Source: Auanema rhodensis (Eukaryota; Animalia; Nematoda). Taken from it: a DNA stretch of 64,000 bases. Shown here piece after piece: positions 5,401 to 41,500 of this stretch (position 1 is the first letter of the stretch; each line of letters begins with the position of its first letter). A program made the position numbers and the translations under genes. The stretch covers positions 6,324,001-6,388,000 of the forward strand of contig OZ059896.1 of assembly GCA_964057225.1 (NCBI GenBank). Direction: 5' to 3'. The notes below the pieces were generated by a model, which had not been told where the DNA came from, did not search any database, and saw only the letters and a program-made list of their open reading frames with translations.

Positions 5401-5531
5401 ACTCAAAGTTTTTTTTTAATATGAAATAATTTAGATGTCACTCACTCTTCTACTCTCGCTCCCTCTTAATTAATATTTAAGAATCACAATCTATATATGT
5501 AACTGTCTTTCATATATCATCTTGTAACCAC

Positions 5532-5586
<55 letters not shown>

Positions 5587-6365
5587 CACACCTCTCTCTC
5601 TCTCTCTCATTCATTGAGATTGCTCTGATTGCTTATAAGCCTTAACAATGTTCATCCAAGTAGAATAGTGCCTCCTGTTCTGTAGTACCGTATGCGACGA
5701 GGAGGAATTGCTACAGCAGCTTCACCTTCGAATAATGGCTCTGAGGCAGAATAGCCTTAATTATAAAATCAATGCTTCAAATATAATGTAAGTATTTACG
5801 GGCATTATCAATGAAATCTTCAGATCTACGAAGACGGCCCTCGAAGGCGCTTACAGCCATAGAAATCTGAAGACAACCCCTACCATATAGTTAACATATA
5901 ATGTATTACCTGTACAAGACTGATAACCAGTACAAAGAGCAAAACTCGCACGTTCATTTTCCTATAAATAATTCAATTTCGAAATTGAAATACACTATGT
6001 TATGAGATATATTAAGAATATCAAGTAATGTAATATGAAATCCATGAGAAGATAGGAGGGGGGAGGAGGTTTCCTATCCTCTAAATTTTTCATCTGATTA
6101 CGAAGGAATGCTATATGATGAGAATATTTAGAAATTCTTCTTTGGCCATTCAACACATCTTTTCATAAAACTCACGAATAACTCATTGAATTTATGTGGA
6201 AAAAAGGTGATAATCGTTTTTGATTCACTTGAAATATCGAAAGACGTCAGGTGACATATAAAATTAGAAAGATAATCAAATTTCTTCTTTTTATATAAAT
6301 AGAAAAGAATTTTTTATGCAAAATCATAATAGCCTTGTATTAAAAAAAGTTAAAAGGTGAGATAG

Positions 6366-6434
<69 letters not shown>

Positions 6435-19771: not shown

Positions 19772-21890
19772 TTATGGTATTTGTTCAGAATAATTGTAAA
19801 CATTTCCTTTGCATATATCTTCAAACATTCTATCCTTCGCAATTAACTGAAAGGTGTTCAGTAGATGCATATTTTCTGAAGTCTTTATAGCGTGTGTCTG
19901 AAAAATAATATTAATGATTTTCTTAATATATATTGAGCAACCTTAATAGCCCCCAACGTCATAAATAGTTCAGCCATACGAATTTCGGGATCTCTCCCAG
20001 GTTCTTTCGACGAACTATCTTGATTGTAATATACAAAAATATCTTTAATTAGCTGATCTCGAATACTCCAAATAATTTCTTTTGTTTCATGTTTTAAAGT
20101 AGCAACAGCTGAAAAATATTCGTTAGAAATACGGTTATTAAAAGTGAAAAGATGTACTTGGATCTAATAGAGTAAGTCCACATAGTGCAATCATTTCAGT
20201 ATCTGATATATTAAGATCTTTCATTTGAACACTTATAGTTGACATTGCTGATTCAAATGACGAAACAAACAAACTTCAACAATGATATATAGATTTGAAA
20301 ATGAATAAATTAAAATACCTTTTAGCATCATTGTAACTCAGCTTGAGCGTATTCATAACACCATCATTCCAATATTTTTGAGCTTCTAGTATATTAATAT
20401 AAATTCTATAAATCGAAAGCTTAGAAAAGAATGAGATGAAAAATAGCTCCCTAACCTATTAGGCATTACCCAACATCTCTTCTCTAACCCGCCAAATTTC
20501 CACGTCAAATAGGGCTCTTCTATTGCTTGACGTAAAATTACAAAATTACGGAATAACTTTGCCTAAAATTCAATTAAATAGCTACAAAATTATGTGAAAT
20601 TCGTACTTTCTCACGAGGTTCCACTGAAACTAAAAATTTGTTTTCTGAAACAAATTCTGCAGCTAGTCTTGGTTCTACTTTCCATATTTGATACATACAT
20701 TCATGAAAGTCAGTAATCTCGACAATTTCCTTAAAGAAAAGTGAAAAATTTTAACTATGATTTTCATAACTTACTAATTCATTGGGTTCAAAAAGATTTT
20801 CACATACTCCATTAGTATAAAAAAGTTTACGTTTTTTCATTAAACATTCCTGCCTGTCTAACAATTCATCCAATATACGGGGCTCATGTTGAGGTATCAC
20901 TGAGAATGGACTAGCAGGACTATCGCTTTTGGTCTGATCAACTTCAATAAGAAAAACATTAAGAACAAAAGAAACAATATAATAGTACTTGGAGAATATT
21001 CCCTTTTTACACCAGCTGCATACTTGCCAATAGCATCTCTACGATGTTGCACAGCTTAAAACAAAATCAAAATAATAAAAAAGTTATTGTAAAAAATATA
21101 AATGAAAAAAAAAAGGTGTTGAAATGTGAGATATAACGTTTTCATTACGATTGTCAGAAAGCTTAAAAAATTGAAATAATGAATACCAGTTTTATCCATT
21201 CCAGCAGATTCACATTTTTTAAAACGACAGGAACGACATTTTTGTCCACCCTGAACATCTGAAATAAAGATATTCAATATTTATTTGTTAGGATAAATCG
21301 GGACTCTTTAATACAAATTTTCGGATTATGACAAAAAAAAACATCAAAAATCAAAGATGAAAAAAAATATATATCATAAAGCTGAACCAGAAGGAAGAAG
21401 AACAAATTTACTTTTACTGTAGAAAACGGTAAAATGTTAAAATATCGAATATAAATAAAAATTATGGCAATAAAGTGTATACTGATTTTAAATCAAATTC
21501 TTTATACGGTAAAATTGTAAGAGCAGCAAACCTTTTGAAACTGTACATGTTCCTTTCTTAGGACAGTCATATTCTTTATTGAGTACTACTGTTCTTCGGA
21601 AAAAAGCTGAACAAGCTGCACATGCATCAACCCCAAAATGAATCCCTGTTGAATCAGCACCACAAATCGCACATGGGACCTTGAATTTAAGCAGTTCAAA
21701 AAAGAAAAAAATGTCAGGAAAGTACGCAAAAGTACTAAAGAACTTTTAAGAAATAACAAAATGAAAAGAAAAAACTAACTCTGCGATCTGCGTGTTGCGG
21801 TGTGCTCGGAGGAGAATCTGACAATATGGGTTCTTCCTTGGGTACCACACAACTAGATATTTGTGAATCTGAAGAGGAAGTGCTAGGCAT
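19772..21890 (-). CDS. Nematode-expanded (HNF4-derived) nuclear hormone receptor, C4 zinc finger plus ligand-binding domain
   Basis: DBD: [43 protein letters not shown]..|..[19 protein letters not shown]|[13 protein letters not shown]: ..[62 protein letters not shown]. Multiple short introns; an extra upstream exon is possible. Confidence 0.92.
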
Positions 21891-24409
21891 TATAATATCG
21901 CCGGCATCGATTCTGTAAAAAAAAACAATTTTTCAACAATTCAATGATTTAAAGAAAACAAGAAGTACAGGAAAAATAAGTTTTATAGAATGACAGCTGG
22001 GTGACTTTTTTAAATTTAAAAAAGAATGACAATAAACTGACCCTGATAAAAAGAGAGACGATTGTAAAGACAGTGTAGAATGTGTGTTTGGCACAATCAC
22101 ATGACCTGAACCCATTGGAGCTGTAATATCTTTGATAAGTCAAGATCAAGTAGAAGTTAAAGCGTATTTGCTCCAATAAATATAAAATGCAACAAAAACA
22201 GCGATGAACTATACCTATAGATATCAGGCCATGACTTGACATATTACGATGATCAGGGCAATTACCCGAAATATGACGCTAAAAAGAAGTATACGATAGA
22301 TGAATTAAATCTTGATATCAAAGAACAAGAACAAAATACTGATGATTTCTAGACAATACAAATGACGTATATGTACCCAAAACTGTTTCAATCTAGAAAC
22401 GATGAAAAGATAGCAAATGACGTCAAATCAAATGAGATACAATACGAAAAATATTGGTTAATCTACATATATGATGTCACACATAAGTTAAAATAAGTAT
22501 ACAACCAAGAAAGTTTGAAATGAGAAGAGATAATGCAACACTTTATAGTAAATGTGTCTTATCATATAATAGGTATACCAACCAGATAGCGAATGGAAGG
22601 ACTCTTACTCGGTGTATGCGCAAGCGAATGCCTATTATTTAATCGAATACATATTATATTATAATAATATATATAATTATTAAGAAAATTAAAATATGAT
22701 TAACCAATATGTAGAAGTAATATTTCGATCTCACTTAACTCATGCTTAAAAAAAGACAAAGACGTATTCATCATGAATTTATTTGCCTTCGAAATGTCAA
22801 TTGTAACATTAAGATAGACGAATACAATTCAGAAGAAAAGTGACATTAATCAGCCATCGAGATGAATTTTCATGTGATATACGAGAAGCCACGTGAAAAG
22901 TACAAAATGAAACAGATTAACGACATGAAAGAAAAATGAAAAATTAAGTGAATACAGCTAAATCAGGCCAAAATGTGGTCGCATTCATGTTCATTTTAAT
23001 GTTATTTATTCAATTTAATAGCATAATATTGTTTTGAAACAAGAATATACTTATCTTCTATTTCAAACTAAAAAAAGTAAACGATGAAAGAGCTAAAAGC
23101 ACTGTTCTTCATTATTCTCTTTGGTTGGTTAGTGGCTGACTGGCAGAGCTAGACAAGAGAGATTCCAACCTGCAACATAGGGGGTGGACAGCAAGGGGCT
23201 AACACTGCGTCTCTGCCCGTTCGATGTATACTATGCTCTCGCAATTTTCTTTTTGTCTCATAATACCTCTCTCTATCTCTCTTTTATGGTTATTCTTTAT
23301 TTATCTCTCTTTTAACTTTTCAGTGTTAGGCCTAATTCGGGGCAGTACACATACTTGAATATGGAGAGAGTAGAAGTAGCATAGAGACGGGTAGAGGCAT
23401 TAGAAGAGGGTAAGACAAGAAAAAGTACACGAAAAGCACGCCTCCTAACTACAAATTCGAGCATACATACCAGGTGTCGGGTGACTATGAGCAAAATGGA
23501 GACAACGCGAAAGAGCGACGTTTCATTTGCATCAAGTTGTTGTCATCAACGCCTCTCACTGTGTTTTACTTCTATATTTAACAACGAATATATCCAATGT
23601 GTGCATATGATGACCTATACTGTTCCAGATCAAACAACTTGAGACGTGTTGAAAACTTTTTGTCTCATAGCAAAAGGTCATCTAACTTTCTATCCACAGT
23701 CATTCATATTTGAGAAAATATTATTAAAAATATATGTAAACCAATTATCTATAGAATTAAGTTCAAAATATTTCAAAAGGTTCATGTTTTATTTGAAAAT
23801 TAATTTATTAAACTAGTTTGATTATATCTGACTTTAATTTATTCAAAATATTCACTTATGAGAGAGGTTCAATAAGTTTGGAATTGAATTAAATTTATAA
23901 TTCATCAGAAAACGACTAAATGTATGAAAAATATCTAAAATTTGAAAGAAAACGGATTTTTAATGATCTATATAATGAGAATTTGTTGAAAGAAGTTGAC
24001 CATTAAACTATATTAGGATGAACTTTAGAGCTCAGACCTCCTCCATAGAACAATGTTTATTTTGAAAACATTTTACTTTCCTGATAACATATGACCAGAA
24101 GATATGACTTTCAGAAATGTTTTAGAAACTTAGAATGACCAACTAAAGTTTAAGCTACTTTGTACATTAATCATACCTGTAATAATAATTATTATAAGTA
24201 TCTATGACCCGATAAGGATTTGATCATAATGATCATAATCCTGTCTATATTAGCAAACACAATATATTATATAAACATAATGTTTTATTCAATTGTTTGT
24301 GACAGAATGAGTTATACAAAACAAAATTTTGTATATATCTCTTACAACATAATAGAACAAACATTTTCATTTTATCCATTGCCATGTGCTGATTGAGCTA
24401 ATTCGTCAA

Positions 24410-25483
24410 TTACACAGCTCTACGTAAATATACAAGAGAACGTGGAGGGCATGGGCAATATTCAGCATCGTGTCCTGGGAACCCGGCCTCTCCTTGACGC
24501 CCAGATAGACCGGAGTCACCGTTAGCACCTGGGTTACCAGATTCTCCCATTTCTCCCTGAGGTCCTTGTCTTCCTGGTTGTCCATCGGAACCAGGTACTC
24601 CAGGCTTTCCAGGTGCACCAGCAGAACCTTGGGGTCCAGGTTGTCCAGAAGTACGCTTATAAACGGTTCCATCTTTTCCGGGTAAGCCTGGCTTGCCATC
24701 TAATCCAGGTCTTCCAGGTGTACCAGCATCTCCAGCAGGTCCCTGCGGTCCAGGAGCTCCAGATCGAGTAGATGGAATTCCGGGTGGTCCAGGTCTTCCA
24801 TCAGGTCCAGCTGGTCCATGTGGTCCATCGGGGCCTGGTGGTCCAGCAGGTCCTGCAGGGCATTGAATGCAACCAGTATCAGCTACAGCACAAGATACGG
24901 AATATCCCGTATCCGAGTTATCAAGACCACGTGGTCCGGGAAGGCCAGGTGCTTAAATATTTTTTAAAAAATTGTATGTAAATTCTATCTTACTTCCTGG
25001 CTCTCCGGCTATTCCTGGTGGTCCTGGAGGTCCAGGTGGACATTGAGGCATTGAATCACATTGACACCAATCAGGAAGCTCAGCAAAACTGAAGAAACAG
25101 TGCTCATCATTACCTTGTTCATAGACACATACCGTTTTTCACGTCTTAACAATGGATTCTCACGTCTATTTGATGCTTGAGATCTAGCAGGACCAAACAC
25201 AAATTGAAGATCCATTAAATCGCTCCATGATGAATCAGTATCAACCTTGAGAAAAATTTCATATCTCAGTTATTTCAATGTTTAGGAAAAATTTTTAATG
25301 TTAAGCTCAGCTTTTTGTTGTAGCATGAGAGAATGTTACCTTGAATTGCTCAACAGCACCACTGATTTCCAGCTGGAGATCAGCCATGTCCCAGTATAAA
25401 CGTGGCAAGAAAATTGTAGCCATTAGAAGAGATAAAGCTGCTCCACATGATGATATACTAACAACCACCGATAATGGTGACAT
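24410..25483 (-). CDS. Nematode cuticle collagen (Col_cuticle_N plus interrupted Gly-X-Y)
   Basis: [48 protein letters not shown]|[16 protein letters not shown] (furin-type site), [33 protein letters not shown].. Gly-X-Y blocks, C-terminal [19 protein letters not shown]. Confidence 0.95.
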
Positions 25484-27071
25484 CTGGAATGATTAAATTT
25501 CATGTTCAATTTGGGTAATATGAGCAATGCAATTTGAAATTGAACTTTGGTATAAAAAGTACACGATTTCTTATTTTTAAATATATTAAACGGAATATTT
25601 ATAAGAATATTAAAAATATAATATATAATTATAAATATATATATATATATATGCAACATGAATTAGACTAATATTCTGAGATCAACGGATTCAACTACTA
25701 TACATGTCTGATGTAGGATTCAGGCTGTTGAAAATCAGAATAAACATTTGATCAAAACGAAAATTGGATTCCAACTAGAAGTAACGATTCGAAACTGTTC
25801 TTATATGGCCTATCAGAAAGAGGAGGTACCATCATTTGCATTTTGACATGAAAAACGTTGAATAAGAAGATGAGAATGGTGATTGTTAGAGGCAACAAGC
25901 AATTAAACAGGAAAAGTTATTGGAAGAAACTAGAGAGGAAATAGAAATGAAAATACATTGTAGGAAAAGAAAGAGAAAGAGTGAGAGAGAGAGAGAGAGA
26001 GGAATAGAAAGAAATAAGAAATTGAGAAATAAAAAGAGATTGAAAATGATACAAGAACTTCTTCAAATCTATTTACGCAATAAGAAATCCTCGTAACTTT
26101 TTTCATTTGAAAGACAAGCGGAAAAACGCGTGTGTATGTTGACCAAGATAAGTAGTTCTATCCTCTTTATGCAACATGAATCATATATAGCAACATGAAA
26201 GCAAAAAAACTATATGTTGATATATAATTTATAATTCAACAACTTTCTTTCTCCTCAAACTCTATACTGATCAGAACTTATGTTTTCCGATCATGTAAGG
26301 GTTTATATCCATCTTCAACTACAAGTAAATACATATATGATTTTTATAAATTTTAATTTTTCATGGAAATGAAATACTTCACTTATCTTACTTCATTATT
26401 TTAACAAAAAAAAACGATCAAGGTCAATATTTCATAAAAAAAAACAAAAATTAAAACAATCTTCTTGTTATGTGTTTTTTCTTCTTTATAATTCAATAGA
26501 AAACTACTACTATTTCTTTTACGAAAAGAAGAAGAAAAAAGAAATCGTTTCGCTCATCTGTAAATCGTTGATGATGCATTTGAAATGAATTGCCACATAA
26601 AGCAGCATCGTTTTGAGTTTCAAAAAATATGAAGGACATTCGAGAAAATTTATAAAAATATCTTGTAAACCTTCATTCATTCCATCTATCTATAAACCTT
26701 CTAAGCTATTCCTTTTTCAGTTGTCGCTTATTTTTTTTGAAATGTTACCACTGTTCAATAACCGGACACCTTTTTTTGTTCTACCTGCTTGACTATGCAT
26801 TTATACAATTTGGAATTGAATTAATCATTAAAAAATCTTGTATTTCATCTTTTTCTTTCTTTTTTTAATAATATAATTTAATAATATTTTTAGATATTTA
26901 TTTTATGATATCAGATAAATATACTTTATAAATAATAACAAGTATATTATAATATATATTTTTTTATTTTAAGATTTATTTCTGAAAAAAAAAATATAAT
27001 ATAAAATATGTTATATAAGATTTGAATACAGCATATTTTTAATTGAATATATTTCATGATCGGGGAGAAAT

Positions 27072-27396
27072 AGTCCAGGAACAAAATAGTCGAGAGCAGA
27101 ACCGAGGAAGAACCGAAGAGTCGAGGAAGAACCAAGAAGTCCAGAAGGAACCAGATTAGGTCCGTGAACCAAAGCCGAAGAGCCGAGGAAGAACCAACAA
27201 GTCGAAAGCAGAGTCGAGGAAGAACCAACGAGTCGAAAGCAGAGTCGAGGAAGAACCACTGAGTCGAGGAAGAACCGAAGAGTCGAGGAAGAACCAAGAA
27301 GTCCAGAAGGAACCAGATTGGGTCCGTGAATCAAAGCCGAAGAGTCGAGGAAGAACCTAAGAGCCGAGGAAGAACCAAGAAGTCCAGAAGGAACCA
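27072..27396 (-). repeat. Short copy of degenerate ~19-bp repeat (GAGTCGAGGAAGAACC..), reverse complement of 35149-38460
   Basis: GAAGTCCAGAAGGAACCAGATTAGGTCCGTGAACC and GAGTCGAGGAAGAACC units are reverse complements of units in the right-hand block. Confidence 0.9.
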
Positions 27397-30060
27397 GAGT
27401 AGGTCCGTGGTCCAGAAGATCCATGATTGGAAGTAGCCATCAAGGCGTAACGTCGTACACGTTGCTCAATCCTATGAATTTCAAGAATACAAATAGATTA
27501 TAATTTCGAATTCTTACCTAAAATTAGAAATACGAAGAGAGAGTAGGTCCGAGGTCCAGAAGATCCATGGTTGGAAGCAGCTATCGTACCGTCGTACACG
27601 TTGCTCAATCCTATGAATTTCAAGAATACAAATAGATTATAATTTCAAATTCTTACCTAAAATCAGAAATACGAAGAGAGAGTAGGTCCGAGGTCCAGAA
27701 GATCCATGATTGGAAGCAGCTATCGTACCGTCGTACACGTTGCTCAATCCTATGAATTTCAAGAATACAAATAGATTATAATTTCAAATTCTTACCTAAA
27801 ATCAGAAATACGAAGAGAGAGTAGGTCCGAGGTCCAGAAGATCCATGATTGGAAGCAGCTATCGTACCGTCGTACACGTTGCTCAATCCTATGAATTTCA
27901 AGAATACAAATAGATTATAATTTCAAATTCTTACCTAAAATCAGAAATACGAAGAGAGAGTAGGTCCGAGGTCCAGAAGATCCATGGTTGGAAGCAGCTA
28001 TCGTACCGTCGTAAACGTTGCTCAATCCTATGAATTTCAAGAATACAAATAGATTATAATTTCAAATTCTTACCTAAAATCAGAAATACGAAGAGAGAGT
28101 AGGTCCGTGGTCCAGAAGATCCATGATTGGAAGTAGCCATCAAGGTGTAACGTCGTACACGTTGCTCAATCCTATGAATTTCAAGAATACAAATAGATTA
28201 TAATTTCAAATTCTTACCTAAAATCAGAAATACGAAGAGAGAGTAGGTCCGTGGTCCAGAAGATCCATGATTGGAAGTAGCCATCAAGGTGTAACGTCGT
28301 ACACGTTGCTCAATCCTATGAATTTCAAGAATACAAATAGATTATAATTTCAAATTCTTACCTAAAATCAGAAATACGAAGAGAGAGTAGGTCCGTGGTC
28401 CAGAAGATCCATGATTGGAAGTAGCCATCAAGGTGTAACGTCGTACACGTTGCTCAATCCTATGAATTTCAAGAATACAAATAGATTATAATTTCAAATT
28501 CTTACCTAAAATCAGAAATACGAAGAGAGAGTAGGTCCGAGGTCCAGAAGATCCATGGTTGGAAGCAGCTATCGTACCGTCGTACACGTTGCTCAATCCT
28601 ATGAATTTCAAGAATACTAATAGATTATAATTTCAAATTCTTACCTAAAATCAGAAATACGAAGAGAGAGTAGGTCCGAGGTCCAGAAGATCCATGGTTG
28701 GAAGCAGCTATCGTACCGTCGTAAACGTTGCTCAATCCTATGAATTTCAAGAATACAAATAGATTATAATTTCAAATTCTTACCTAAAATCAGAAATACG
28801 AAGAGAGAGTAGATCCACTGTCCAGAAGATCCATGATTGGAAGTAGCCATCAAGGCGTAACGTCGTACACGTTGCTCAATCCTATGAATTTCAAGAATAC
28901 TAATAGATTATAATTTCAAATTCTTACCTAAAATCAGAAATACGAAGAGAGAGTAGATCCACTGTCCAGAAGATCCATGATTGGAAGTAGCCATCAAGGC
29001 GTAACGTCGTACACGTTGCTCAATCCTATGAATTTCAAGAATACTAATAGATTATAATTTCAAATTCTTACCTAAAATCAGAAATACGAAGAGAGAGTAG
29101 GTCCGAGGTCCAGAAGATCCATGGTTGGAAGCAGCTATCGTACCGTCGTAAACGTTGCTCAATCCTATGAATTTCAAGAATACAAATAGATTATAATTTC
29201 AAATTCTTACCTAAAATCAGAAATACGAAGAGAGAGTAGGTCCGAGGTCCAGAAGATCCATGGTTGGAAGCAGCTATCGTACCGTCGTACACGTTGCTCA
29301 ATCCTATGAATTTCAAGAATACTAATAGATTATAATTTCAAATTCTTACCTCAAATCAGAAATACGAAGAGAGAGTAGGTCCGAGGTCCAGAAGATCCAT
29401 GGTTGGAAGCAGCTATCGTACCGTCGTACACGTTGCTCAATCCTATGAATTTCAAGAATACTAATAGATTATAATTTCAAATTCTTACCTAAAATCAGAA
29501 ATACGAAGAGAGAGTAGGTCCGAGGTCCAGAAGATCCATGGTTGGAAGCAGCTATCGTACCGTCGTAAACGTTGCTCAATCCTATGAATTTCAAGAATAC
29601 AAATAGATTATAATTTCAAATTCTTACCTAAAATCAGAAATACGAAGAGAGAGTAGATCCACTGTCCAGAAGATCCATGATTGGAAGTAGCCATCAAGGC
29701 GTAACGTCGTACACGTTGCTCAATCCTATGAATTTCAAGAATACTAATAGATTATAATTTCAAATTCTTACCTAAAATCAGAAATACGAAGAGAGAGTAG
29801 ATCCACTGTCCAGAAGATCCATGATTGGAAGTAGCCATCAAGGCGTAACGTCGTACACGTTGCTCAATCCTATGAATTTCAAGAATACTAATAGATTATA
29901 ATTTCAAATTCTTACCTAAAATCAGAAATACGAAGAGAGAGTAGATCCACTGTCCAGAAGATCCATGATTGGAAGTAGCCATCAAGGCGTAACGTCGTAC
30001 ACGTTGCTCAATCCTATGAATTTCAAGAATACTAATAGATTATAATTTCAAATTCTTACC
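27397..30060 (-). repeat. Tandem array of 139/144-bp monomers, 19 copies (left arm)
   Basis: TCCAGAAGATCC recurs at 27411, 27555, 27694, 27833 and so on (periods 144 and 139). The two monomer types differ by a 5-bp indel. Confidence 0.97.
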
Positions 30061-30555
30061 AGGTAATGAGCACTTTTACAATAACAGAGTGACTATAACA
30101 GAGTGAGCTTGGTCGTTTGTTGAATAGATATAATTATCTGGACATTAGATATATTAAAACATGTTACACAGATCATCTCCGTTTTCGAATTATCGGAGTT
30201 ATACAATAATGAAATCAAAAATTATAAACTCACGTACTCTTTATAATATCTGTAATTTTAAAATGAATAGTTAGAACAAGAACTGAAACTTAGGTATGTG
30301 GCTTGTTGAAGCCATATTACAGCTGCAGTTGTTCTAGTCTTCGTTTTGCAGAACTATTATATATAAATTATGTTCTCGGTTAATCTTGTCGACTTTGCTC
30401 TCTGAGAATGAGCTTAGATAAAAAGGGTTCAAGGTAAATACTAAATTACCTAGCTCATACATTTGTTTTTCCACAAGTTCTTCAGAGCTGACAAGAGACT
30501 TTGGGGTCTGAAGAGCTCAGGAGCTGTCGACCTATTCGGATGGCGACAATTGGAC

Positions 30556-30623
30556 AAATGACTGTCAACTGAAAAATAATTAGCTTATATACCCCTTGAC
30601 GAGCAGACCACGTAAACCACGTT
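30556..30623 (-). promoter_or_regulatory. Mirror copy of the putative core promoter, facing leftward
   Basis: Reverse complement of 31140-31207 (TATA at 30584-30591). Confidence 0.55.
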
Positions 30624-31139
30624 TGCGTGAAATTTTAAAAATTCTAAAAACAAAAACCGGCTGTACATGATTTGAAAATCATAGGAAATGAATGAGAATT
30701 GTGTTTAACTAATGTTTTTATTTTTATTTTAAGGAATGATATTATATTTTTAAGGTTCGTATTGTTATTGATATTGTTTTATATTGTTTGAAAATAACAA
30801 ATATTTTTATATAATAATAATTTTCACCTAAATATTTGGGTTTTTTCATTTATTTCAAGTTGGTTAGTACTAACAAATATTTAAATTATTTGAAACATAT
30901 AAATGTTATGAGAATTTAGTATAATTTAATATTTATGCAACACAGACTAAGGCAAATTTATTCTAATTTGGTCTTAAGTTCGGCATTATTGAAATTATAA
31001 GAAAACCGAATATTATCAAAATAGATTCAAAAATATCTCTAGTTATTAGTTTATTTCAAAAAATTTTGTGTTCATTTCCTATGATTTTCAAATCATGTAC
31101 AGCCGGTTTTTGTTTTTAGAATTTTTAAAATTTCACGCA

Positions 31140-31207
31140 AACGTGGTTTACGTGGTCTGCTCGTCAAGGGGTATATAAGCTAATTATTTTTCAGTTGACA
31201 GTCATTT
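31140..31207 (+). promoter_or_regulatory. Putative Pol II core promoter facing outward (2x ACGTGG, TATATAAG, Inr-like TCATTT)
   Basis: GGGGTATATAAGC with TATA at 31172-31179; TCATTT with its A at 31204, 32 nt from the TATA start; tandem ACGTGG motifs just upstream. Confidence 0.55.
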
Positions 31208-31702
31208 GTCCAATTGTCGCCATCCGAATAGGTCGACAGCTCCTGAGCTCTTCAGACCCCAAAGTCTCTTGTCAGCTCTGAAGAACTTGTGGAAAAACAA
31301 ATGTATGAGCTAGGTAATTTAGTATTTACCTTGAACCCTTTTTATCTAAGCTCATTCTCAGAGAGCAAAGTCGACAAGATTAACCGAGAACATAATTTAT
31401 ATATAATAGTTCTGCAAAACGAAGACTAGAACAACTGCAGCTGTAATATGGCTTCAACAAGCCACATACCTAAGTTTCAGTTCTTGTTCTAACTATTCAT
31501 TTTAAAATTACAGATATTATAAAGAGTACGTGAGTTTATAATTTTTGATTTCATTATTGTATAACTCCGATAATTCGAAAACGGAGATGATCTGTGTAAC
31601 ATGTTTTAATATATCTAATGTCCAGATAATTATATCTATTCAACAAACGACCAAGCTCACTCTGTTATAGTCACTCTGTTATTGTAAAAGTGCTCATTAC
31701 CT

Positions 31703-34700
31703 GGTAAGAATTTGAAATTATAATCTATTAGTATTCTTGAAATTCATAGGATTGAGCAACGTGTACGACGTTACGCCTTGTTGGCTATTTCCAATCATGG
31801 ATCTTCTGGACCACGGACCTACTCTCTCTTCGTATTTCTGATTTTAGGTAAGAATTTGAAATTATAATCTATTTGTATTCTTGAAATTCATAGGATTGAG
31901 CAACGTGTACGACGGTACGATAGCTGCTTACAACCATGGATCTTCTGGACCACGGACCTACTCTCTCTTCGTATTTCTGATTTTAGGTAAGAATTTGAAA
32001 TTATAATCTATTAGTATTCTTGAAATTCATAGGATTGAGCAACGTGTACGACGGTACGATAGCTGCTTCCAACCATGGATCTTCTGGACCTCGGACCTAC
32101 TCTCTCTTCGTATTTCTGATTTTAGGTAAGAATTTGAAATTATAATCTATTTGTATTCTTGAAATTCATAGGATTGAGCAACGTGTACGACGGTACGATA
32201 GCTGCTTCCAACCATGGATCTTCTGGACCTCGGACCTACTCTCTCTTCGTATTTCTGATTTTAGGTAAGAATTTGAAATTATAATCTATTTGTATTCTTG
32301 AAATTCATAGGATTGAGCAACGTGTACGACGTTACGATAGCTGCTTCCAACCATGGATCTTCTGGACCACGGACCTACTCTCTCTTCGTATTTCTGATTT
32401 TAGGTAAGAATTTGAAATTATAATCTATTTGTATTCTTGAAATTCATAGGATTGAGCAACGTGTACGACGGTACGATAGCTGCTTCCAACCATGGATCTT
32501 CTGGACCTCGGACCTACTCTCTCTTTGTATTTCTGATTTTAGGTAAGAATTTGAAATTATAATCTATTAGTATTCTTGAAATTCATAGGATTGAGCAACG
32601 TGTACGACGGTACGATAGCTGCTTCCAACCATGGATCTTCTGGACCACGGACCTACTCTCTCTTCGTATTTCTGATTTTAGGTAAGAATTTGAAATTATA
32701 ATCTATTAGTATTCTTGAAATTCATAGGATTGAGCAACGTGTACGACGTTACGCCTTGATGGCTACTTCCAATCATGGATCTTCTGGACAACGGACCTAC
32801 TCTCTCTTCGTATTTCTGATTTTAGGTAAGAATTTGAAATTATAATCTATTAGTATTCTTGAAATTCATAGGATTGAGCAACGTGTACGACGGTACGATA
32901 GCTGCTTCCAACCATGGATCTTCTGGACCTCGGACCTACTCTCTCTTCGTATTTCTGATTTTAGGTAAGAATTTGAAATTATAATCTATTTGTATTCTTG
33001 AAATTCATAGGATTGAGCAACGTGTACGACGGTACGATAGCTGCTTCCAACCATGGATCTTCTGGACCTCGGACCTACTCTCTCTTCGTATTTCTGATTT
33101 TAGGTAAGAATTTGAAATTATAATCTATTTGTATTCTTGAAATTCATAGGATTGAGCAACGTGTACGACGGTACGATAGCTGCTTCCAACCATGGATCTT
33201 CTGGACCTCGGACCTACTCTCTCTTCGTATTTCTGATTTTAGGTAAGAATTTGAAATTATAATCTATTTGTATTCTTGAAATTCATAGGATTGAGCAACG
33301 TGTACGACGGTACGATAGCTGCTTCCAACCATGGATCTTCTGGACCTCGGACCTACTCTCTCTTCGTATTTCTGATTTTAGGTAAGAATTTGAAATTATA
33401 ATCTATTTGTATTCTTGAAATTCATAGGATTGAGCAACGTGTACGACGTTACGCCTTGATGGCTACTTCCAATCATGGATCTTCTGGACAACGGACCTAC
33501 TCTCTCTTCGTATTTCTGATTTTAGGTAAGAATTTGAAATTATAATCTATTTGTATTCTTGAAATTCATAGGATTGAGCAACGTGTACGACGGTACGATA
33601 GCTGCTTCCAACCATGGATCTTCTGGACCTCGGACCTACTCTCTCTTCGTATTTCTGATTTTAGGTAAGAATTTGAAATTATAATCTATTTGTATTCTTG
33701 AAATTCATAGGATTGAGCAACGTGTACGACGGTACGATAGCTGCTTCCAACCATGGATCTTCTGGACCTCGGACCTACTCTCTCTTCGTATTTCTGATTT
33801 TAGGTAAGAATTTGAAATTATAATCTATTTGTATTCTTGAAATTCATAGGATTGAGCAACGTGTACGACGGTACGATAGCTGCTTCCAACCATGGATCTT
33901 CTGGACCTCGGACCTACTCTCTCTTCGTATTTCTGATTTTAGGTAAGAATTTGAAATTATAATCTATTTGTATTCTTGAAATTCATAGGATTGAGCAACG
34001 TGTACGACGGTACGATAGCTGCTTCCAACCATGGATCTTCTGGACCTCGGACCTACTCTCTCTTTGTATTTCTGATTTTAGGTAAGAATTTGAAATTATA
34101 ATCTATTAGTATTCTTGAAATTCATAGGATTGAGCAACGTGTACGACGGTACGATAGCTGCTTCCAACCATGGATCTTCTGGACCTCGGACCTACTCTCT
34201 CTTTGTATTTCTGATTTTAGGTAAGAATTTGAAATTATAATCTATTAGTATTCTTGAAATTCATAGGATTGAGCAACGTGTACGACGGTACGATAGCTGC
34301 TTCCAACCATGGATCTTCTGGACCACGGACCTACTCTCTCTTCGTATTTCTGATTTTAGGTAAGAATTTGAAATTATAATCTATTTGTATTCTTGAAATT
34401 CATAGGATTGAGCAACGTGTACGACGTTACGCCTTGATGGCTACTTCCAATCATGGATCTTCTGGACAACGGACCTACTCTCTCTTCGTATTTCTGATTT
34501 TAGGTAAGAATTTGAAATTATAATCTATTTGTATTCTTGAAATTCATAGGATTGAGCAACGTGTACGACGGTACGATAGCTGCTTCCAACCATGGATCTT
34601 CTGGACCTCGGACCTACTCTCTCTTCGTATTTCTGATTTTAGGTAAGAATTTGAAATTATAATCTATTTGTATTCTTGAAATTCATAGGATTGAGCAACG

Positions 34701-35148
34701 TGTACGACGGTACGATAGCTGCTTCCAACCATGGATCTTCTGGACCTCGGACCTACTCTCTCTTCGTATTTCTGATTTTAGGTAAGAATTTGAAATTATA
34801 ATCTATTTGTATTCTTGAAATTCATAGGATTGAGCAACGTGTACGACGGTACGATAGCTGCTTCCAACCATGGATCTTCTGGACCTCGGACCTACTCTCT
34901 CTTCGTATTTCTGATTTTAGGTAAGAATTTGAAATTATAATCTATTTGTATTCTTGAAATTCATAGGATTGAGCAACGTGTACGACGTTACGCCTTGATG
35001 GCTACTTCCAATCATGGATCTTCTGGACAACGGACCTACTCTCTCTTCGTATTTCTGATTTTAGGTAAGAATTTGAAATTATAATCTATTTGTATTCTTG
35101 AAATTTATAGGATTGAGCAACGTGTACGACGGTACGATGGCTGCTTCC
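31703..35148 (+). repeat. Tandem array of 139/144-bp monomers, ~25 copies, inverted relative to 27397-30060
   Basis: Unit GTAAGAATTTGAAATTATAATCTATTTGTATTCTTGAAATTCATAG-GATTGAGCAACGTGTACGAC..TTTCTGATTTTAG, the reverse complement of the left-array unit. Confidence 0.97.
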
Positions 35149-38100
35149 TTCTGGAGTTCTTTTTTCTTCCTTGACTCGTCGGTTCTTCCTCGGCTCTTTG
35201 GTTCTTCCTCTAATCTTCGGTTCTTCCTCGGTTCTGCTCTCGACTCGTCGGTTCTTCCTCGGCTCTTTGGTTCTTCCTAGACTCTTCGGTTCTTTCTCGC
35301 CTGTTCGAGTTTTCCTCTACTCGTCGGTTCTTCCTCGGCTCTTTGGTTCTTCCTCTAATCTTCGGTTTTGGTTCACGGACCTAATCTGGTTCCTTCAGGA
35401 CTTCTTGGTTCTTCCTTGACTCGTCGGTTCTTCCTCGATTCTTCGGTAATTCCTCGGTTCTGCTCTCAACTCGTCGGTTCTTCCTCGGCTCTTTGGTTCT
35501 TCCTAGACTCTTCGGTTCTTTCTCGCCTGTTCGAGTTTTCCTCTACTCTTCGGTTTTGGTTCACGGACCTGATCTGGTTCATTCTGGACTTCTTTCCCCT
35601 TCCTCGACTCTCCGTTCTTCCTCGACTCTTCGGTTCTTCCTCGACTCTGCTCTCGACTCGTCGGTTTTTCCTCGGCTCTTTGGCTCTTCTTCGACTCTTC
35701 GGTTTTGGTTCACGGACCTAATCTGGTTTCTTCTGGACTTCTTGGTTCTTCTTCGACTCGTCGGTTTTTCCTCGACTCTGCTCTCGACTCGTCGGTTCTT
35801 CTTCTACTCTTCGGTTTTGGTTCACGGACCCAATCTGGTTTCTTCTGGACTTCTTGGTTCTTCCTTGACTCGTCGGTTCTTCCTCGGCTCTTTGGTTCTT
35901 CCTCTAATCTTCGGTTTTGGTTCACGGACCTAATCTGGTTCCTTCAGGACTTCTTGGTTCTTCCTTGACTCGTCGGTTCTTCCTCGATTCTTCGGTTCTT
36001 CCTCGGTTCTGCTCTCGACTCGTCGGTTCTTCCTCGGCTCTTTGGTTCTTCCTCTAATCTTTGGTTTTGGTTCACGGACCTAATCTGGTTCCTTCGGGAC
36101 TTCTTGGTTCTTCCTTGAGTCGTCGGTTCTTCCTCGGTTCTTCGGTTCTTCCTAGACTCTTCGGTTCTTTCTCGCCTGTTCGAGTTTTCCTCTACTCTTC
36201 GGTTTTGGTTCACGGACCTGATCTGGTTCATTCTGGACTTCTTGCCCCTTCCTCGACTCTCCGTTCTTCCTCGACTCTTCGGTTCTTCCTCGACTCTGCT
36301 CTCGACTCATCGGTTTTTTCTCGACTCTGCTCTCGGCTCTTTGGTTCTTCTTCGACTCTTTGGTTCTTCTTCGACTCTTTGGTTCTTCTTCGACTCTTTG
36401 GTTCTTCTTCGACTCTTTGGTTCTTCTTCGACTCTTTGGTTCTTCTTCGACTCTTTGGTTCTTCTTTGACTCTTCGGTTTTCGTTCACGGACCTAATCTG
36501 GTTTCTTCTGGACTTCTTGGTTCTTCCTCGACTCTTCGGTTTTTCCTCGACCCTGCTCTCGACTCGTCGGTTCTTCTTCGACTCTTTGGTTCTTCTTCGA
36601 CTCTTTGGTTCTTCTTCGACTCTTTGGTTCTTCTTTGACTCTTCGGTTTTCGTTCACGGACCTAATCTGGTTTCTTCTGGACTTCTTGGTTCTTCCTCGA
36701 CCCTGCTCTCGACTCGTCGGTTCTTCTTCTACTCTTCGGTTTTGGTTCACGGACCCAATCTGCTTTCTTCTGGACTTCTTGCTTTTTCCTTGACTCGTCG
36801 GTTCTTTCTCGCCTGTTCGAGTTTTCCTCTACTCTTCGGTTCTGGTTCACGGACCTAATCTGGTTTCTTCTGGACTTCTGACCCTTCCTCGACTCTCCGT
36901 TCTTCCTCGACTCTGCTCTCGACTCGTCGGTTTTTCCTCGGCTCTTTGGTTGTTCTTCGACTTTTCGGTTTTGGTTCATGGACCTAATCTGGTTCCTTCA
37001 GGACTTCTTGGTTCTTCCTTGACTCGTCGGTTCTTCCTCGATTCTTCGGTTCTTCCTCGGTTCTGCTCTCGACTCGTCGGTTCTTCCTCGGCTCTTTGGT
37101 TCTTCCTCTAATCTTTGGTTTTGGTTCACGGACCTAATCTGGTTCCTTCGGGACTTCTTGGTTCTTCCTTGAGTCGTCGGTTCTTCCTCGGTTCTTCGGT
37201 TCTTCCTAGACTCTTCGGTTCTTTCTCGCCTGTTCGAGTTTTCCTCTACTCTTCGGTTTTGGTTCACGGACCTGATCTGGTTCATTCTGGACTTCTTGCC
37301 CTTCCTCGACTCTCCGTTCTTCCTCGACTCGTCGGTTTTTTCTCGACTCTGCTCTCGACTCGTCGGTTTTTCCTCGGCTCTTTGGTTCTTCTTCGACTTT
37401 TCGGTTTTGGTTCATGGACCTAATCTGGTTCCTTCAGGACTTCTTGGTTCTTCCTTGACTCGTCGGTTCTTCCTCGATTCTTCGGTTCTTCCTCGGTTCT
37501 GCTCTCGACTCGTCGGTTCTTCCTCGGCTCTTTGGTTCTTCCTCTAATCTTTGGTTTTGGTTCACGGACCTAATCTGGTTCCTTCGGGACTTCTTGGTTC
37601 TTCCTTGAGTCGTCGGTTCTTCCTCGGTTCTTCGGTTCTTCCTAGACTCTTCGGTTCTTTCTCGCCTGTTCGAGTTTTCCTCTACTCTTCGGTTTTGGTT
37701 CACGGACCTGATCTGGTTCATTCTGGACTTCTTGCCCTTCCTCGACTCTCCGTTCTTCCTCGACTCGTCGGTTTTTTCTCGACTCTGCTCTCGACTCGTC
37801 GGTTTTTCCTCGGCTCTTTGGTTCTTCTTCGACTCTTTGGTTCTTCTTCGACTCTTCGGTTTTGGTTCACGGACCTAATCTGGTTTCTTCTGGACTTCTT
37901 GGTTCTTCCTCGACTCTTCGGTTTTTCCTCGACCCTGCTCTCGACTCGTCGGTTTTGGTTCATGGACCTAATCTGGTTCATTCTGGACTTCTGACCCTTC
38001 CTCGACTCTCCGTTCTTCCTCGACTCTTCGGTTCTTCCTCGACTCTGCTCTCGACTCGTCGGTTTTTCCTCGGCTCTTTGGTTGTTCTTCGACTTTTCGG

Positions 38101-38460
38101 TTTTGGTTCATGGACCTAATCTGGTTCATTCTGGACTTCTGACCCTTCCTCGACTCTCCGTTCTTCCTCGACTCTTCGGTTCTTCCTCGACTCTGCTCTC
38201 GACTCGTCGGTTTTTTCTCGACTCTGCTCTCGACTCGTCGGTTTTTCCTCGGCTCTTTGGTTGTTCTTCGACTTTTCGGTTTTGGTTCATGGACCTAATC
38301 TGGTTCATTCTGGACTTCTGACCCTTCCTCGACTCTCCGTTCTTCCTCGACTCTTCGGTTCTTCCTCGACTCTGCTCTCGACTTGTCGGTTCTTCCTCGA
38401 CTCTTCGGTTATTCCTCAACTCTTCGGTTCTTCCAGGGCACTTTGATTCTTCCTTTGACT
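35149..38460 (+). repeat. Pyrimidine-rich degenerate minisatellite (~19-bp TTCTTCCTCGACTCTTCGG core) with internal block duplications
   Basis: The core is interspersed with GGTTCACGGACCTAATCTGGTT modules. Identical 95-aa ORF translations at 35944, 36998 and 37434 mark duplicated blocks. Confidence 0.93.
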
Positions 38461-38513
38461 CGTTGGTTTTTCCTACCCCATCCACAAGATTTCTTCCGTG
38501 GTCCAGCAGATCC

Positions 38514-41500
38514 TTTGTGAACGAACTTTTTTTCAGAAAAACGACTTTTTTGTGAACAATTCTTGGGGATGGGGTCGATATAAACCGTTTTTCCGGAAAC
38601 ACGAGAATTCCTAGCCAAATCTGACTTGAAAATTCCGATTCTACACATCTGAATACCCAACCTCAAGGTGTTTTTGTTTTATTTTAGTTGATGATCTTGG
38701 AGTAAATCGGACATTCACCGGGCACAACGTGCCTACAGCCTGAACTTTTTTGTGAACAAATCTTCTGAATTGGGTCGATATAAACCTTTTTTTCGGAAAA
38801 AGGAGAATTCCTAGCCAAATCTGACTCGGAAATTCCGATTCTACACATCTGAATACCCAACCTCGGGGTGTTTTTGTTTTATTTAAGTTGATGATCTTGA
38901 AGTAAATAGCAGATTCACCGGGCACAACGTGCCTACAGCCTGAACTTTTTTGTGAACAAATCTTCTGAATTGGGTCGATATAAACCTTTTTTTCCGAAAA
39001 AGGAGAATTCCTAGTCAAATCTGACTTGGAAATTCCGATTCTACACATCTGAATACCCAACCTCGAGCTGTTTTTGTTTTATTTTAGTTGATGATCTTGG
39101 AGTAAATAGCAGATTCACCGGGCACAACGTGCCTACAGCCTGAACTTTTTTGTGAACAAATCTTGTGGATGGGGCCGATATAAACCTTTTTTTCGGAAAA
39201 AGGAGAATTCCTAGTCAAATCTGACTTGGAAATTCCGATTCTACACATCTGAATACCCAACCTCGAGGTGTTTTTGTTTTATTTTAGTTGATGATCTTGG
39301 AGTAAATCGGACATTCACCGGGCACAACGTGCCTACAGCCTGAACTTTTTTGTGAACAAATCTTCTGAATTGGGTCGATATAAACCTTTTTTTCGGAAAA
39401 AGGAGAGTTCCTAGCCAAATCTGACTCGGAAATTCCGATTCTACACATCTGAATACCCAATCTCGGGGTGTTTTTGTTTTATTTTAGTTGATGATCTTGG
39501 AGTAGATAGCAGATTCACCGGGCACAACGTGCCGACAGCCTGAACTTTTTTGTGAACAAATCTTGTGGATGGGGCCGATATAAACCTTTTTTTCGGAAAA
39601 AGGAGAATTCCTAGTCAAATCTGACTTGGAAATTCCGATTCTACACATCTGAATACCCAACCTCGAGCTGTTTTTGTTTTATTTTAGTTGATGATCTTGG
39701 AGTAAATAGCAGATTCACCGGGCACAACGTGCCTACAGCCTGAACTTTTTTGTGAACAAATCTTGTGGATGGGGCCGATATAAACCTTTTTTTCGGAAAA
39801 AGGAGAATTCCTAGCCAAATCTGACTCGAAAAATTCCGATTCTACACATCTGAATACCCAACCTCGGGGTGTTTTTGTTTTATTTTAGTTGATGATCTTG
39901 GAGTAAATATCAGATTCACCGGGCACAACGTGCCTACAGCCTGAACTTTTTTGTGAACAAATCTTGTGGATGGGGCCGATATAAACCTTTTTTTCAGAAA
40001 AAGGAGAATTCCTAGTCAAATCTGACTTGGAAATTCCGATTCTACACATCTGAATACTCAACCTCGAGGTGTTTTTGTTTTATTTTAGTTGATGATCTTG
40101 GAGTAAATCGGACATTCACTGGGCACAACGTGCCTACAGCCTGAACTTTTTTGTGAACAAATCTTGTGGATGGGGCCGATATAAACCTTTTTTTCAGAAA
40201 AAGGAGAATTCCTAGTCAAATCTGACTTGGAAATTCCGATTCTACACATCTGAATACTCAACCTCGAGGTGTTTTTGTTTTATTTTAGTTGATGATCTTG
40301 GAGTAAATCGGACATTCACCGGGCACAACGTGCCTACAGCCTGAACTTTTTTGTGAACAAATCTTCTGAATTGGGTCGATATAAACCTTTTTTTCGGAAA
40401 AAGGAGAATTCCTAGTCAAATCTGAGTTGGAAATTCCGATTTTACACATCTGAATACTCAACCTCGAGGTGTTTTTGTTTTATTTTAGTTGATGATCTTG
40501 GAGTAAATCGGACATTCACCGGGCACAACGTGCCTACAGCCTGAACTTTTTTGTGAACAAATCTTCTGAATTGGGTCGATATAAACCTTTTTTTCGGAAA
40601 AAGGAGAATTCCTAGTCAAATCTGAGTTGGAAATTCCGATTCTACACATCTGAATACTCAACCTCGAGGTGTTTTTGTTTTATTTTAGTTGATGATCTTG
40701 GAGTAAATCGGACATTCACCGGGCACAACGTGCCTACAGCCTGAACTTTTTTGTGAACAAATCTTCTGAATTGGGTCGATATAAACCTTTTTTTCGGAAA
40801 AAGGAGAATTCCTAGTCAAATCTGAGTTGGAAATTCCGATTTTACACATCTGAATACTCAACCTCGAGGTGTTTTTGTTTTATTTTAGTTGATGATCTTG
40901 GAGTAAATCGGACATTCACCGGGCACAACGTGCCTACAGCCTGAACTTTTTTGTGAACAAATCTTGTGGATGGGGCCGATATAAACCTTTTTTTCGGAAA
41001 AAGGAGAATTCCTAGCCAAATCTGACTTGGAAATTCCGATTCTACACATCTGAATACCCAACCTCGGGGTGTTTTTGTTTTATTTAAGTTGATGATCTTG
41101 GAGTAAATCGGACATTGACCGGGCACAACGTGCCTACAGCCTGAACTTTTTTGTGAACAAATCTTCTGAATTGGGTCGATATAAACCTTTTTTTCGGAAA
41201 AAGGAGAATTCCTAGTCAAATCTGACTTGGAAATTCCGATTCTACACATCTGAATACTCAACCTCGGGGTGTTTTTGTTTTATTTTAGTTGATGATCTTG
41301 GAGTAAATCGGACATTCACCGGGCACAACGTGCCTACAGCCTGAACTTTTTTGTGAACAAATCTTGTGGATGGGGTCGATATAAACCTTTTTTTCGGAAA
41401 AAGGAGAATTCCTAGCCAAATCTGACTCGGAAATTCCGATTCTACACATCTGAATACCCAACCTCGGGGTGTTTTTGTTTTATTTTAGTTGATGATCTTG

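Follow-up and report, generated by a model that had tools for sequence, protein, structure and literature searches.

What is the mirror-symmetric block of DNA that lies between the last gene and a large satellite in this nematode sequence, and does its symmetry reflect function, mobility or a history of duplication? The window, by which we mean the whole stretch of 64,000 nucleotides that was analysed, places the 11.4-kb cassette where a preliminary description had put it, between a collagen gene and more than 25 kb of satellite (Table 1). Proteins of this genome are absent from the protein database, where the best match of the collagen gene was 56% identical. The published FISH probes AT-1, XR-1, XT-1 and XT-2 did not match the 200-bp satellite at up to 3 mismatches, and the matches found within the junction between cassette and satellite were short and weak. 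No similarity was found between the cassette and the rest of the window, and exact look-ups of 18 ORFs of the window found none of them in the protein and contig collections.

Table 1. Features of the cassette and its surroundings, in positions of the window.
Feature	Position	Strand	Description
Nematode cuticle collagen gene	24413–25483	-	start 1.5 kb beyond the left cassette edge; transcription directed away from it
Left outer layer	27072–27409	-	short degenerate 19/31/81-bp repeats; TRF rows 27103–27409
Left 139/144-bp array	27410–30060	-	19 units, oriented leftward; TRF 27396–30060, 18.8 copies
Left unique arm	30061–30692	-	632 bp
Spacer	30693–31070	.	378 bp, 19% GC
Right unique arm	31071–31702	+	632 bp; TATATAA 31174–31180; GT..AG candidates including 31314–31361
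Right 139/144-bp array	31703–35148	+	25 units; TRF 24.6 copies
Right outer layer	35149–38474	+	3.3 kb of 19/31/50-bp repeats, higher-order periods up to 436 bp; TRF from 35164
Satellite junction	38475–38543	.	messy; short inverted satellite-like piece and 19-nt array-like piece in opposite orientation
200-bp satellite	38544–64000 (window end)	+	more than 127 copies; TRF

The cassette had been described as three nested layers mirrored on either side of the spacer. Their order and opposite orientation are real, but exact mirror symmetry is confined to the unique arms. When one arm was compared with the reverse complement of the other, there were 0 mismatches in 632 positions, and a longer inverted pair (29844–30712 and 31051–31919; 869 nt) was 98% identical. 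The spacer is not symmetric with itself, based on an alignment score of 34 against its own reverse complement and a shuffle mean of 36. A gene-converting palindrome is expected to have inverted arms that are nearly identical and, between them, a unique spacer; the cassette has both.

Outward from the arms, the symmetry decays. The first array unit beside each arm already carries 8 differing sites, and the two arrays have neither the same number of units nor the same succession of 139- and 144-bp units: the left array has 8 full 144-bp units, and in the right array the 144-bp units are numbers 1, 8, 13, 20 and 24. Three private variants of the left array (ACAGTGGATC, TTACACC and CGTTTACG) are absent from the right. 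The outer layers are unequal in length by about tenfold (0.3 kb on the left versus 3.3 kb on the right), and the best right-side match of the left outer layer (35855–36141, 85% identity) lies 700 bp out of mirror register. Array and outer layer also meet at different monomer positions on the left and on the right. The 3' part of the exon-like segment of the array monomer, described below, is homologous to a composite unit of the outer layer, which suggests that the layers are derived from each other.

We hold with moderate confidence that the cassette is a genuine, foldback-like, non-protein-coding palindrome of a layered repeat locus, either young or homogenised by conversion. The starting locus would have consisted of short repeats of the 19-bp type, followed by a 139/144-bp array and then by unique sequence. 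This locus would have been duplicated in inverted orientation around the 378-bp spacer, probably by fold-back or template-switch repair at the edge of the satellite block. The identity of the arms closest to the centre would reflect either a very recent event or the exchange of sequence between arms by gene conversion. Unequal exchange and slippage may afterwards have rearranged the tandem layers, independently on the two sides.

A foldback transposon with eroded ends would show layered inverted repeats as well. Such a non-autonomous element, of the FB, Galileo, Tetris or Tm1 type, would have terminal inverted repeats built from tandem repeats and a short non-coding middle, and we consider this an unlikely identity for the cassette. 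Published foldback elements have terminal inverted repeats with tandem-repeat and inner unique domains and a non-coding middle domain (Tetris, PMC4079207; Tm1, PMC3169594); they also show unequal repeat numbers at their ends, a location at heterochromatin borders and a link to the birth of satellites (PMC4079207, PMC3169594). The architecture of the cassette fits these elements, including the unequal tandem-repeat inverted repeats (19 versus 25 units in the arrays, 0.3 versus 3.3 kb in the outer layers). The Tm1-HH elements of the nematode Meloidogyne, which lack obvious protein-coding potential and one of which carries the spliced Cg-1 transcript (PMC3169594), provide a further precedent. However, transposon termini are absent from the cassette. 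Foldback elements are expected to be flanked by TSDs of 7–10 bp, and no direct k-mer of at least 8 bp is shared between 26960–27130 and 38380–38580; the outermost 65–70 nt of the two ends align with a score of 16, the same as the shuffle mean of 16. There is no transposase, no further copy was found in the window or in the metagenome and prokaryote contigs scanned, and 11.4 kb is large for such an element. The sequence CCTACCC at 38473 equals Motif A2 of Tm1; its orientation is wrong, and we therefore take the match as a coincidence.

The array monomer combines a 46-nt intron-like module with a 93- or 98-nt "exon". All 42 full units keep the sequence GTAAGA...ATAG, and GC content is 20% in the intron-like module versus 47% in the "exon". 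The real introns of the collagen gene are 42–44 nt long and have a GTAAGA donor, so that the module resembles them in length, donor and composition. In addition, the right unique arm terminates exactly at the first GTAAGAAT donor. Since every monomer carries a module with the exact appearance of a local intron, the array is probably the descendant, or even a surviving part, of a spliced non-coding transcription unit. If so, the duplication proposed above would automatically have produced two identical copies facing outward.

Array monomers are 96–99% identical, with varying sites at 1 of 46 positions in the "intron" and 8 of 93 in the "exon". With the "intron" the less variable of the two, nothing hints at constraint specific to the "exon", and the splice sites are identical among units because the monomers are near-identical copies.

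The intron-like module bears on a second reading, under which the cassette is one functional unit of two divergent, multi-exon lncRNA genes built from repeats, with TATA and Inr promoters at the inner ends of the arms, serving as a border element or a source of RNA. We regard this reading as doubtful. The transcription starts first proposed, 31204(+) and 30559(-), do occupy exact mirror positions, each with a TATATAA box 30 nt upstream, and the site 30 nt downstream of the box is YYANWYY-like in each arm. The arm ending at a consensus donor and the retention of GTAAGA...ATAG in modules of local-intron size and AT-richness are consistent with spliced transcription, as is the non-coding nature of the locus, and the unique arms, unlike the layers that flank them, show perfect conservation. 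Arms at 100% identity beside outer layers at 85% could mean selection on the arms, as for a functional promoter or RNA.

Several of these signals carry less weight than they first appear to. TATATAA is common, with 38 occurrences in the flanking 27 kb. Splice-like signals do lie on the strand of the putative promoter on both sides, as had been claimed, but this and the mirror layout reduce to a single inverted duplication and one 50:50 coincidence of orientation. Because a single inverted duplication explains the mirror layout, the two sides are dependent evidence and their layout is no evidence for function. The constancy of the splice sites likewise follows from the identity of the monomers. 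An Rfam search at E<=1 over 26000–39500 returned nothing; the RNA fold of 31204–31702 is just mildly structured (z = -2.1), and folds of array units are no better than shuffles (z above 0). A known RNA family was rejected, based on the lack of an Rfam match and the folds of the units.

A more ambitious form of the lncRNA reading is a long shot. Here, an identical pair of outward-facing lncRNA genes, whose bodies consist of arrayed exon-intron modules, would be expressed in the germline or embryo and kept identical by conversion between the arms. In a nematode with programmed DNA elimination (PDE), the pair would mark or insulate the border between genes needed in the soma and a megabase-scale satellite block, independently of the cutting motif SFE (Sequence For Elimination), for example by seeding small RNAs or chromatin states that distinguish retained from discarded DNA. 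SFE break sites are 29-bp degenerate palindromes with a conserved GGC-N3-GCC core (10.64898/2026.08.27.747507; PMC13060919). We scanned by this described GGC/GCC core rather than by the published A. rhodense weight matrix, and GGCNNNGCC occurred zero times in the whole 64-kb window, including the spacer. One GGC/GCC match with a 4-nt spacer was found at position 520, far from the cassette, and a relaxed scan that allowed one mismatch gave a sole site at 20452, with 7 of 14 pairs. The spacer of the cassette holds GGC half-sites only, plus an 18-bp near-palindrome, TTGGTTAGT/ACTAACAAA, estimated to be at chance level. A PDE break site was thus rejected on motif, and the option raised in the preliminary description, that the cassette marks chromosome breakage, is unsupported.

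The cassette has no protein-coding capacity, which bears out the non-coding status first given to it. No ORF runs through the conceptually spliced right array because the 98-nt variant shifts the frame and brings in a stop in the other one (frame 3); reading stays open for 383 codons at most. The unique arm has no ORF longer than 46 aa, no ATG leading into the array and neither an initiator nor a signal peptide. There is no ORF of note in the spacer. ORFs in the right outer layer are fragmentary and lie on both strands, and no homologue was found for the 264-aa ORF among them. A phmmer search against 1.84 billion representatives returned low-complexity junk only, word-index searches for protein relatives were blank, and Pfam gave no match to the cassette (the 31-residue repeat frames themselves were compared against Pfam only). 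DNA patterns scanned against metagenome and prokaryote contigs gave no hit, and the repeat sequences were not found in the literature either. A protein-coding cassette was rejected on the missing through-ORF together with the blank, junk-only and Pfam-negative searches.

It is very improbable, for related reasons, that the cassette is a decayed pair of protein-coding genes with tandem exon-intron modules, for example encoding a secreted repeat protein. The 93-nt "exon" equals 31 codons, two frames are open across spliced 93-nt units, and an ATG in each 144-bp unit gives spliced ORFs of 218, 156, 218 and 125 codons. However, the frame-shifting 98-nt "exons" and their stop leave no ORF that spans the array, the arm offers no start for a secreted product, there is no homologue or Pfam family, and the "intron" shows no excess variation.

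The perfect complementarity of the arms would also allow a source of hairpin RNA or small RNA, in which read-through of the whole palindrome would yield a long perfect duplex to be diced into siRNAs. The geometry is suitable, with 632-bp perfectly complementary arms and a 378-nt loop followed by arrays of about 2.6 kb that are about 98% complementary. No external promoter was identified, though, and would-be transcripts would cover one arm each because the sole promoter-like and splice-like signals point outward; we give this reading very little credence. An assembly artefact, whether from a long read that is chimeric or has a missed adapter or from two repeat copies wrongly joined, would account for arms that are 100% identical, and the edge of a huge satellite is where assembly is least reliable. 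This is just as improbable, since artefactual palindromes are perfect and spacer-free and this one has a unique, asymmetric spacer of 378 bp, arrays that differ in unit counts and private variants, and outer layers tenfold unequal.

Even as a mere palindrome, the cassette is a base-resolved example of layered repeats and inverted duplications accumulating at a satellite edge, in a genome from which most satellites are discarded. It is also an example of an intron-bearing module turned satellite monomer. If the arms do drive spliced repeat RNAs, the cassette would be a candidate cis-acting, non-SFE element placed where genes meet satellite in a nematode that eliminates DNA. The lack of an SFE core over 27 kb of gene-side and 25 kb of satellite-side sequence is worth comparing with the published table of break sites. 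The study of these sites reports HiFi coverage of about 236x for retained and about 29x for eliminated DNA, and describes the gene model nxAuaRhod_g826 as an expressed orphan located at an elimination boundary of chromosome 6 (10.64898/2026.08.27.747507).

Among known systems, rhabditid SFE sites share with the cassette a position at a gene/satellite transition, but the palindrome core that defines them is missing from the window. FB, Galileo, Tetris and Tm1 elements resemble it more closely in form, sharing inverted repeats built of tandem repeats, unit complexity that changes from outside in, an inner unique domain, a short non-coding middle, unequal sides and a position at a satellite border. 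The cassette differs from them in having no detectable TSD, shared terminal motif, transposase or second copy, and in a repeat monomer that includes an intron-like module.

A different comparison is with lncRNA loci built from repeats, for example hsr-omega of Drosophila and the macrosatellite lncRNAs. In these as in the cassette, a unique 5' region leads into a long co-oriented array, and coding capacity is lacking. The cassette differs in that an intron-like module is part of each monomer, the locus is a mirror pair, and its transcription is only putative.

The palindromes of primate Y chromosomes, which Rozen and colleagues are said to have found in 2003 to be maintained by arm-to-arm gene conversion, likewise combine near-perfect arms with a unique, non-symmetric spacer, and concerted evolution of the arms is possible in the cassette. 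The cassette is far smaller, and its arms hold no protein-coding genes. Its identity also drops outward, unlike that of the Y palindromes, because the arms give way to rapidly evolving tandem arrays. The remaining comparison is with inverted duplications made by fold-back or template switching where replication ends have broken or stalled: as in these, the cassette consists of inverted copies around a short single-copy spacer, here at a satellite border, and its satellite junction likewise contains small inverted snippets.

The cassette at 27072-38460, an ~11-kb mirror-image repeat block between a collagen gene and a 200-bp satellite, carries the same layers on both sides of a central spacer: a 632-bp unique arm, an array of 139/144-bp units, and an outer layer of 19-bp-type repeats. 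We confirmed this mirror-symmetric layering by inverted-repeat search, Tandem Repeats Finder, and base-by-base comparison, and the coordinates of the preliminary description proved accurate, including the mirror pair of putative transcription starts at 31204 (+) and 30559 (-). The 869-nt inverted arms are 98% identical and are accompanied by many further array-to-array pairs. Base-by-base comparison placed all mismatches of these arms in the array part and the final 20 nt beside the spacer, and the unique arms match at 632 of 632 positions. The consensus units of the two arrays are reverse complements of each other. The spacer (378 bp, 19% GC) lacks self-symmetry, as its own reverse complement scores 34 versus a shuffle mean of 36. 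Elsewhere in the window, the microsatellites (CT)39 at 5531-5608 and (GA)31 at 6370-6431 form an inverted pair ~760 bp apart.

Coordinates of the cassette layers and neighboring features
Feature	Coordinates	Strand	Copies	Source
Nematode cuticle collagen gene, neighbor of cassette	25483 -> 24413	minus
19-bp-type repeats, left	27103-27409			Tandem Repeats Finder
139-bp array, left	27396-30060		18.8	Tandem Repeats Finder
869-nt inverted arm, left	29844-30712			Inverted-repeat search
Unique arm, left	30061-30692			Base-by-base comparison
Spacer	30693-31070
869-nt inverted arm, right	31051-31919			Inverted-repeat search
Unique arm, right	31071-31702			Base-by-base comparison
139-bp array, right	31703-35148		24.6	Tandem Repeats Finder
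19-bp-type repeats, right	35164-38474			Tandem Repeats Finder
200-bp satellite	38544 -> window end			Tandem Repeats Finder

Mirror symmetry weakens with distance from the center. Cut at the GTAAGAAT donor, the right array resolves into 25 units and the left array into 19, with 144-bp units at positions 1, 8, 13, 20, and 24 (right) versus 1-3, 8-9, 12-14, and the final unit (left), and each array has private variants missing from the other. The outer layer spans 3.3 kb on the right versus ~0.3 kb on the left, and the best right-side match of the left layer (35855-36141, 85% identity) lies 700 bp from the array. On the left, the array gives way to the outer layer past "exon" nt ~76; on the right, the switch comes past nt ~35. 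Homology connects the 3' portion of the "exon" (GGACC[AT]CGGACCTACTCT) with the outer layer's composite unit (CACGGACCTAATCTGGTTCCTTCTGGAC); thus, array and outer layer share an evolutionary origin, and the junction can shift when they recombine.

We lean toward reading the cassette as a structural palindrome without a dedicated function. Fold-back or template-switch repair would have created an inverted duplicate of a layered repeat locus at the satellite edge, with a 378-bp loop between the copies. The tandem layers, in which unequal exchange outpaces point substitution by orders of magnitude, would later have diverged in organization, and the substitution-free unique arms would reflect either a recent event or arms converting each other. 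At the cassette/satellite junction (38475-38543), a 22-nt piece resembles the 200-bp satellite in reverse complement, and a 19-nt piece (TCCGTGGTCCAGCAGATCC) matches the array "exon" at 17 of 19 positions in the opposite, left-arm orientation; these short inverted snippets hint at a template-switching environment.

The preliminary description proposed a divergent pair of spliced lncRNA genes. The monomer of the array consists of a 46-nt segment (GTAAGAAT...TTCATAG, 20% GC) and a 93- or 98-nt segment (47% GC). Read against protein relatives, the introns of the collagen gene are AT-rich and 42-44 nt long, with donors GTAAGA and GTATGT and acceptors including TTTAAG and TTCTTCAG, so the 46-nt module fully fits the intron profile of this genome. 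The unique arm stops precisely at the first donor. These two points support the view that the array derives from a spliced transcription unit or still is one; provided that the ancestor was transcribed and spliced, two identical outward copies would now lie in the palindrome, as proposed. Among 42 full units, 1 of 46 "intron" sites varies, along with 8 of 93 and 7 of 98 "exon" sites; constant splice sites mirror array homogeneity only and are no evidence for present function. The 27 kb left of the cassette contain 38 copies of TATATAA. Promoter-like and splice-like signals point outward on both sides, but their mirrored occurrence does not count as independent evidence, since a single inverted duplication of a locus with three layers yields the shared order, the opposite orientation, both "promoters," and the outward splice strand. 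All that is left as an independent coincidence is the common strand of TATA/Inr and splice signals inside a single arm, a chance of about 1 in 2. Functional lncRNA genes are an unlikely reading.

We consider a foldback transposon similarly improbable. The cassette is strongly reminiscent of one in architecture, but no direct repeat of at least 8 bp flanks it. Aligned with each other, the outermost sequences of its ends score no higher than shuffles, the cassette has no transposase, and nothing in the rest of the window resembles any part of it. CCTACCC at the right edge (38473-38479) is identical to Motif A2 in the terminal inverted repeats (TIRs) of the Meloidogyne foldback element Tm1 (PMC3169594); given its wrong orientation and the missing target site duplication, this is probably coincidence.

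The suggestion that the cassette marks chromosome breakage found no support. In Auanema rhodense, 28 of 28 internal break sites of programmed DNA elimination bear a 29-bp palindromic Sequence For Elimination (SFE) resembling that of Oscheius tipulae, and autosomal gene/satellite transitions coincide with break sites (10.64898/2026.08.27.747507). The O. tipulae core is GGC-N3-GCC (PMC13060919). This core (GGCNNNGCC) does not occur in the 64-kb window, spacer included, so the cassette is not a recognizable break signal. A one-mismatch scan of the window with a palindrome requirement gave no convincing SFE-like site, and the 200-bp satellite contains no match to the published FISH probes AT-1, XR-1, XT-1, and XT-2. 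For a gene/satellite transition lacking the core over 64 kb, either the break lies >25 kb away or the satellite is kept in the soma. Between an NHR-like gene and the collagen gene, 23326-23335 is a perfect 10-bp telomere-seed palindrome, TTAGGCCTAA; of even length and without 29-bp symmetry, it is not SFE-like.

Spliced 93-nt units have two open frames; the 98-nt variant shifts the frame by +2 and puts a TGA in the other open frame. Conceptual splicing gives longest open stretches of 383 (right) and 197 (left) codons, and no ATG in the unique arm reads into the array. The outer layers are stop-free by composition, with merely fragmentary open reading frames (ORFs) on both strands. Homologue searches with the unique-arm ORF and a 264-aa outer-layer ORF found none, Pfam matched none of six ORFs, both "exon" frames among them, and Rfam gave no match at E<=1 (26000-39500). 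These results support the non-coding nature claimed earlier; the locus is non-coding, or at most a decayed gene, an origin we rate as very improbable. In the conceptually spliced right array, each 144-bp unit gives an ATG (ALMATSNHG) and the following one a stop, making four tandem ORFs (218, 156, 218, and 125 codons) of a 31-residue repeat ending LFVFLIL, with no Pfam match. At the left junction, a low-complexity 137-aa ATG ORF (27011-27424, minus strand) runs from the last array unit through the entire outer layer into unique DNA, with AATAAA ~40 nt past its stop; phmmer against 1.84 billion representatives returned four matches, all other-repeat translations or low-complexity proteins, and no homologues.

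That the arms serve as a hairpin-RNA source seems remote. A chimeric-read or false-join palindrome made in assembly is equally hard to credit, given the unique, asymmetric spacer, the differing unit counts and private variants of each side, and the tenfold length difference between outer layers.

The cassette's architecture strongly recalls the foldback elements Tetris (PMC4079207) and nematode Tm1, the parallels being tandem-repeat domains within the TIRs, a unique domain on the inner side, a middle domain that is non-coding, and unequal ends. The cassette belongs to known kinds: a foldback-like palindrome and a satellite with an intron-bearing monomer.
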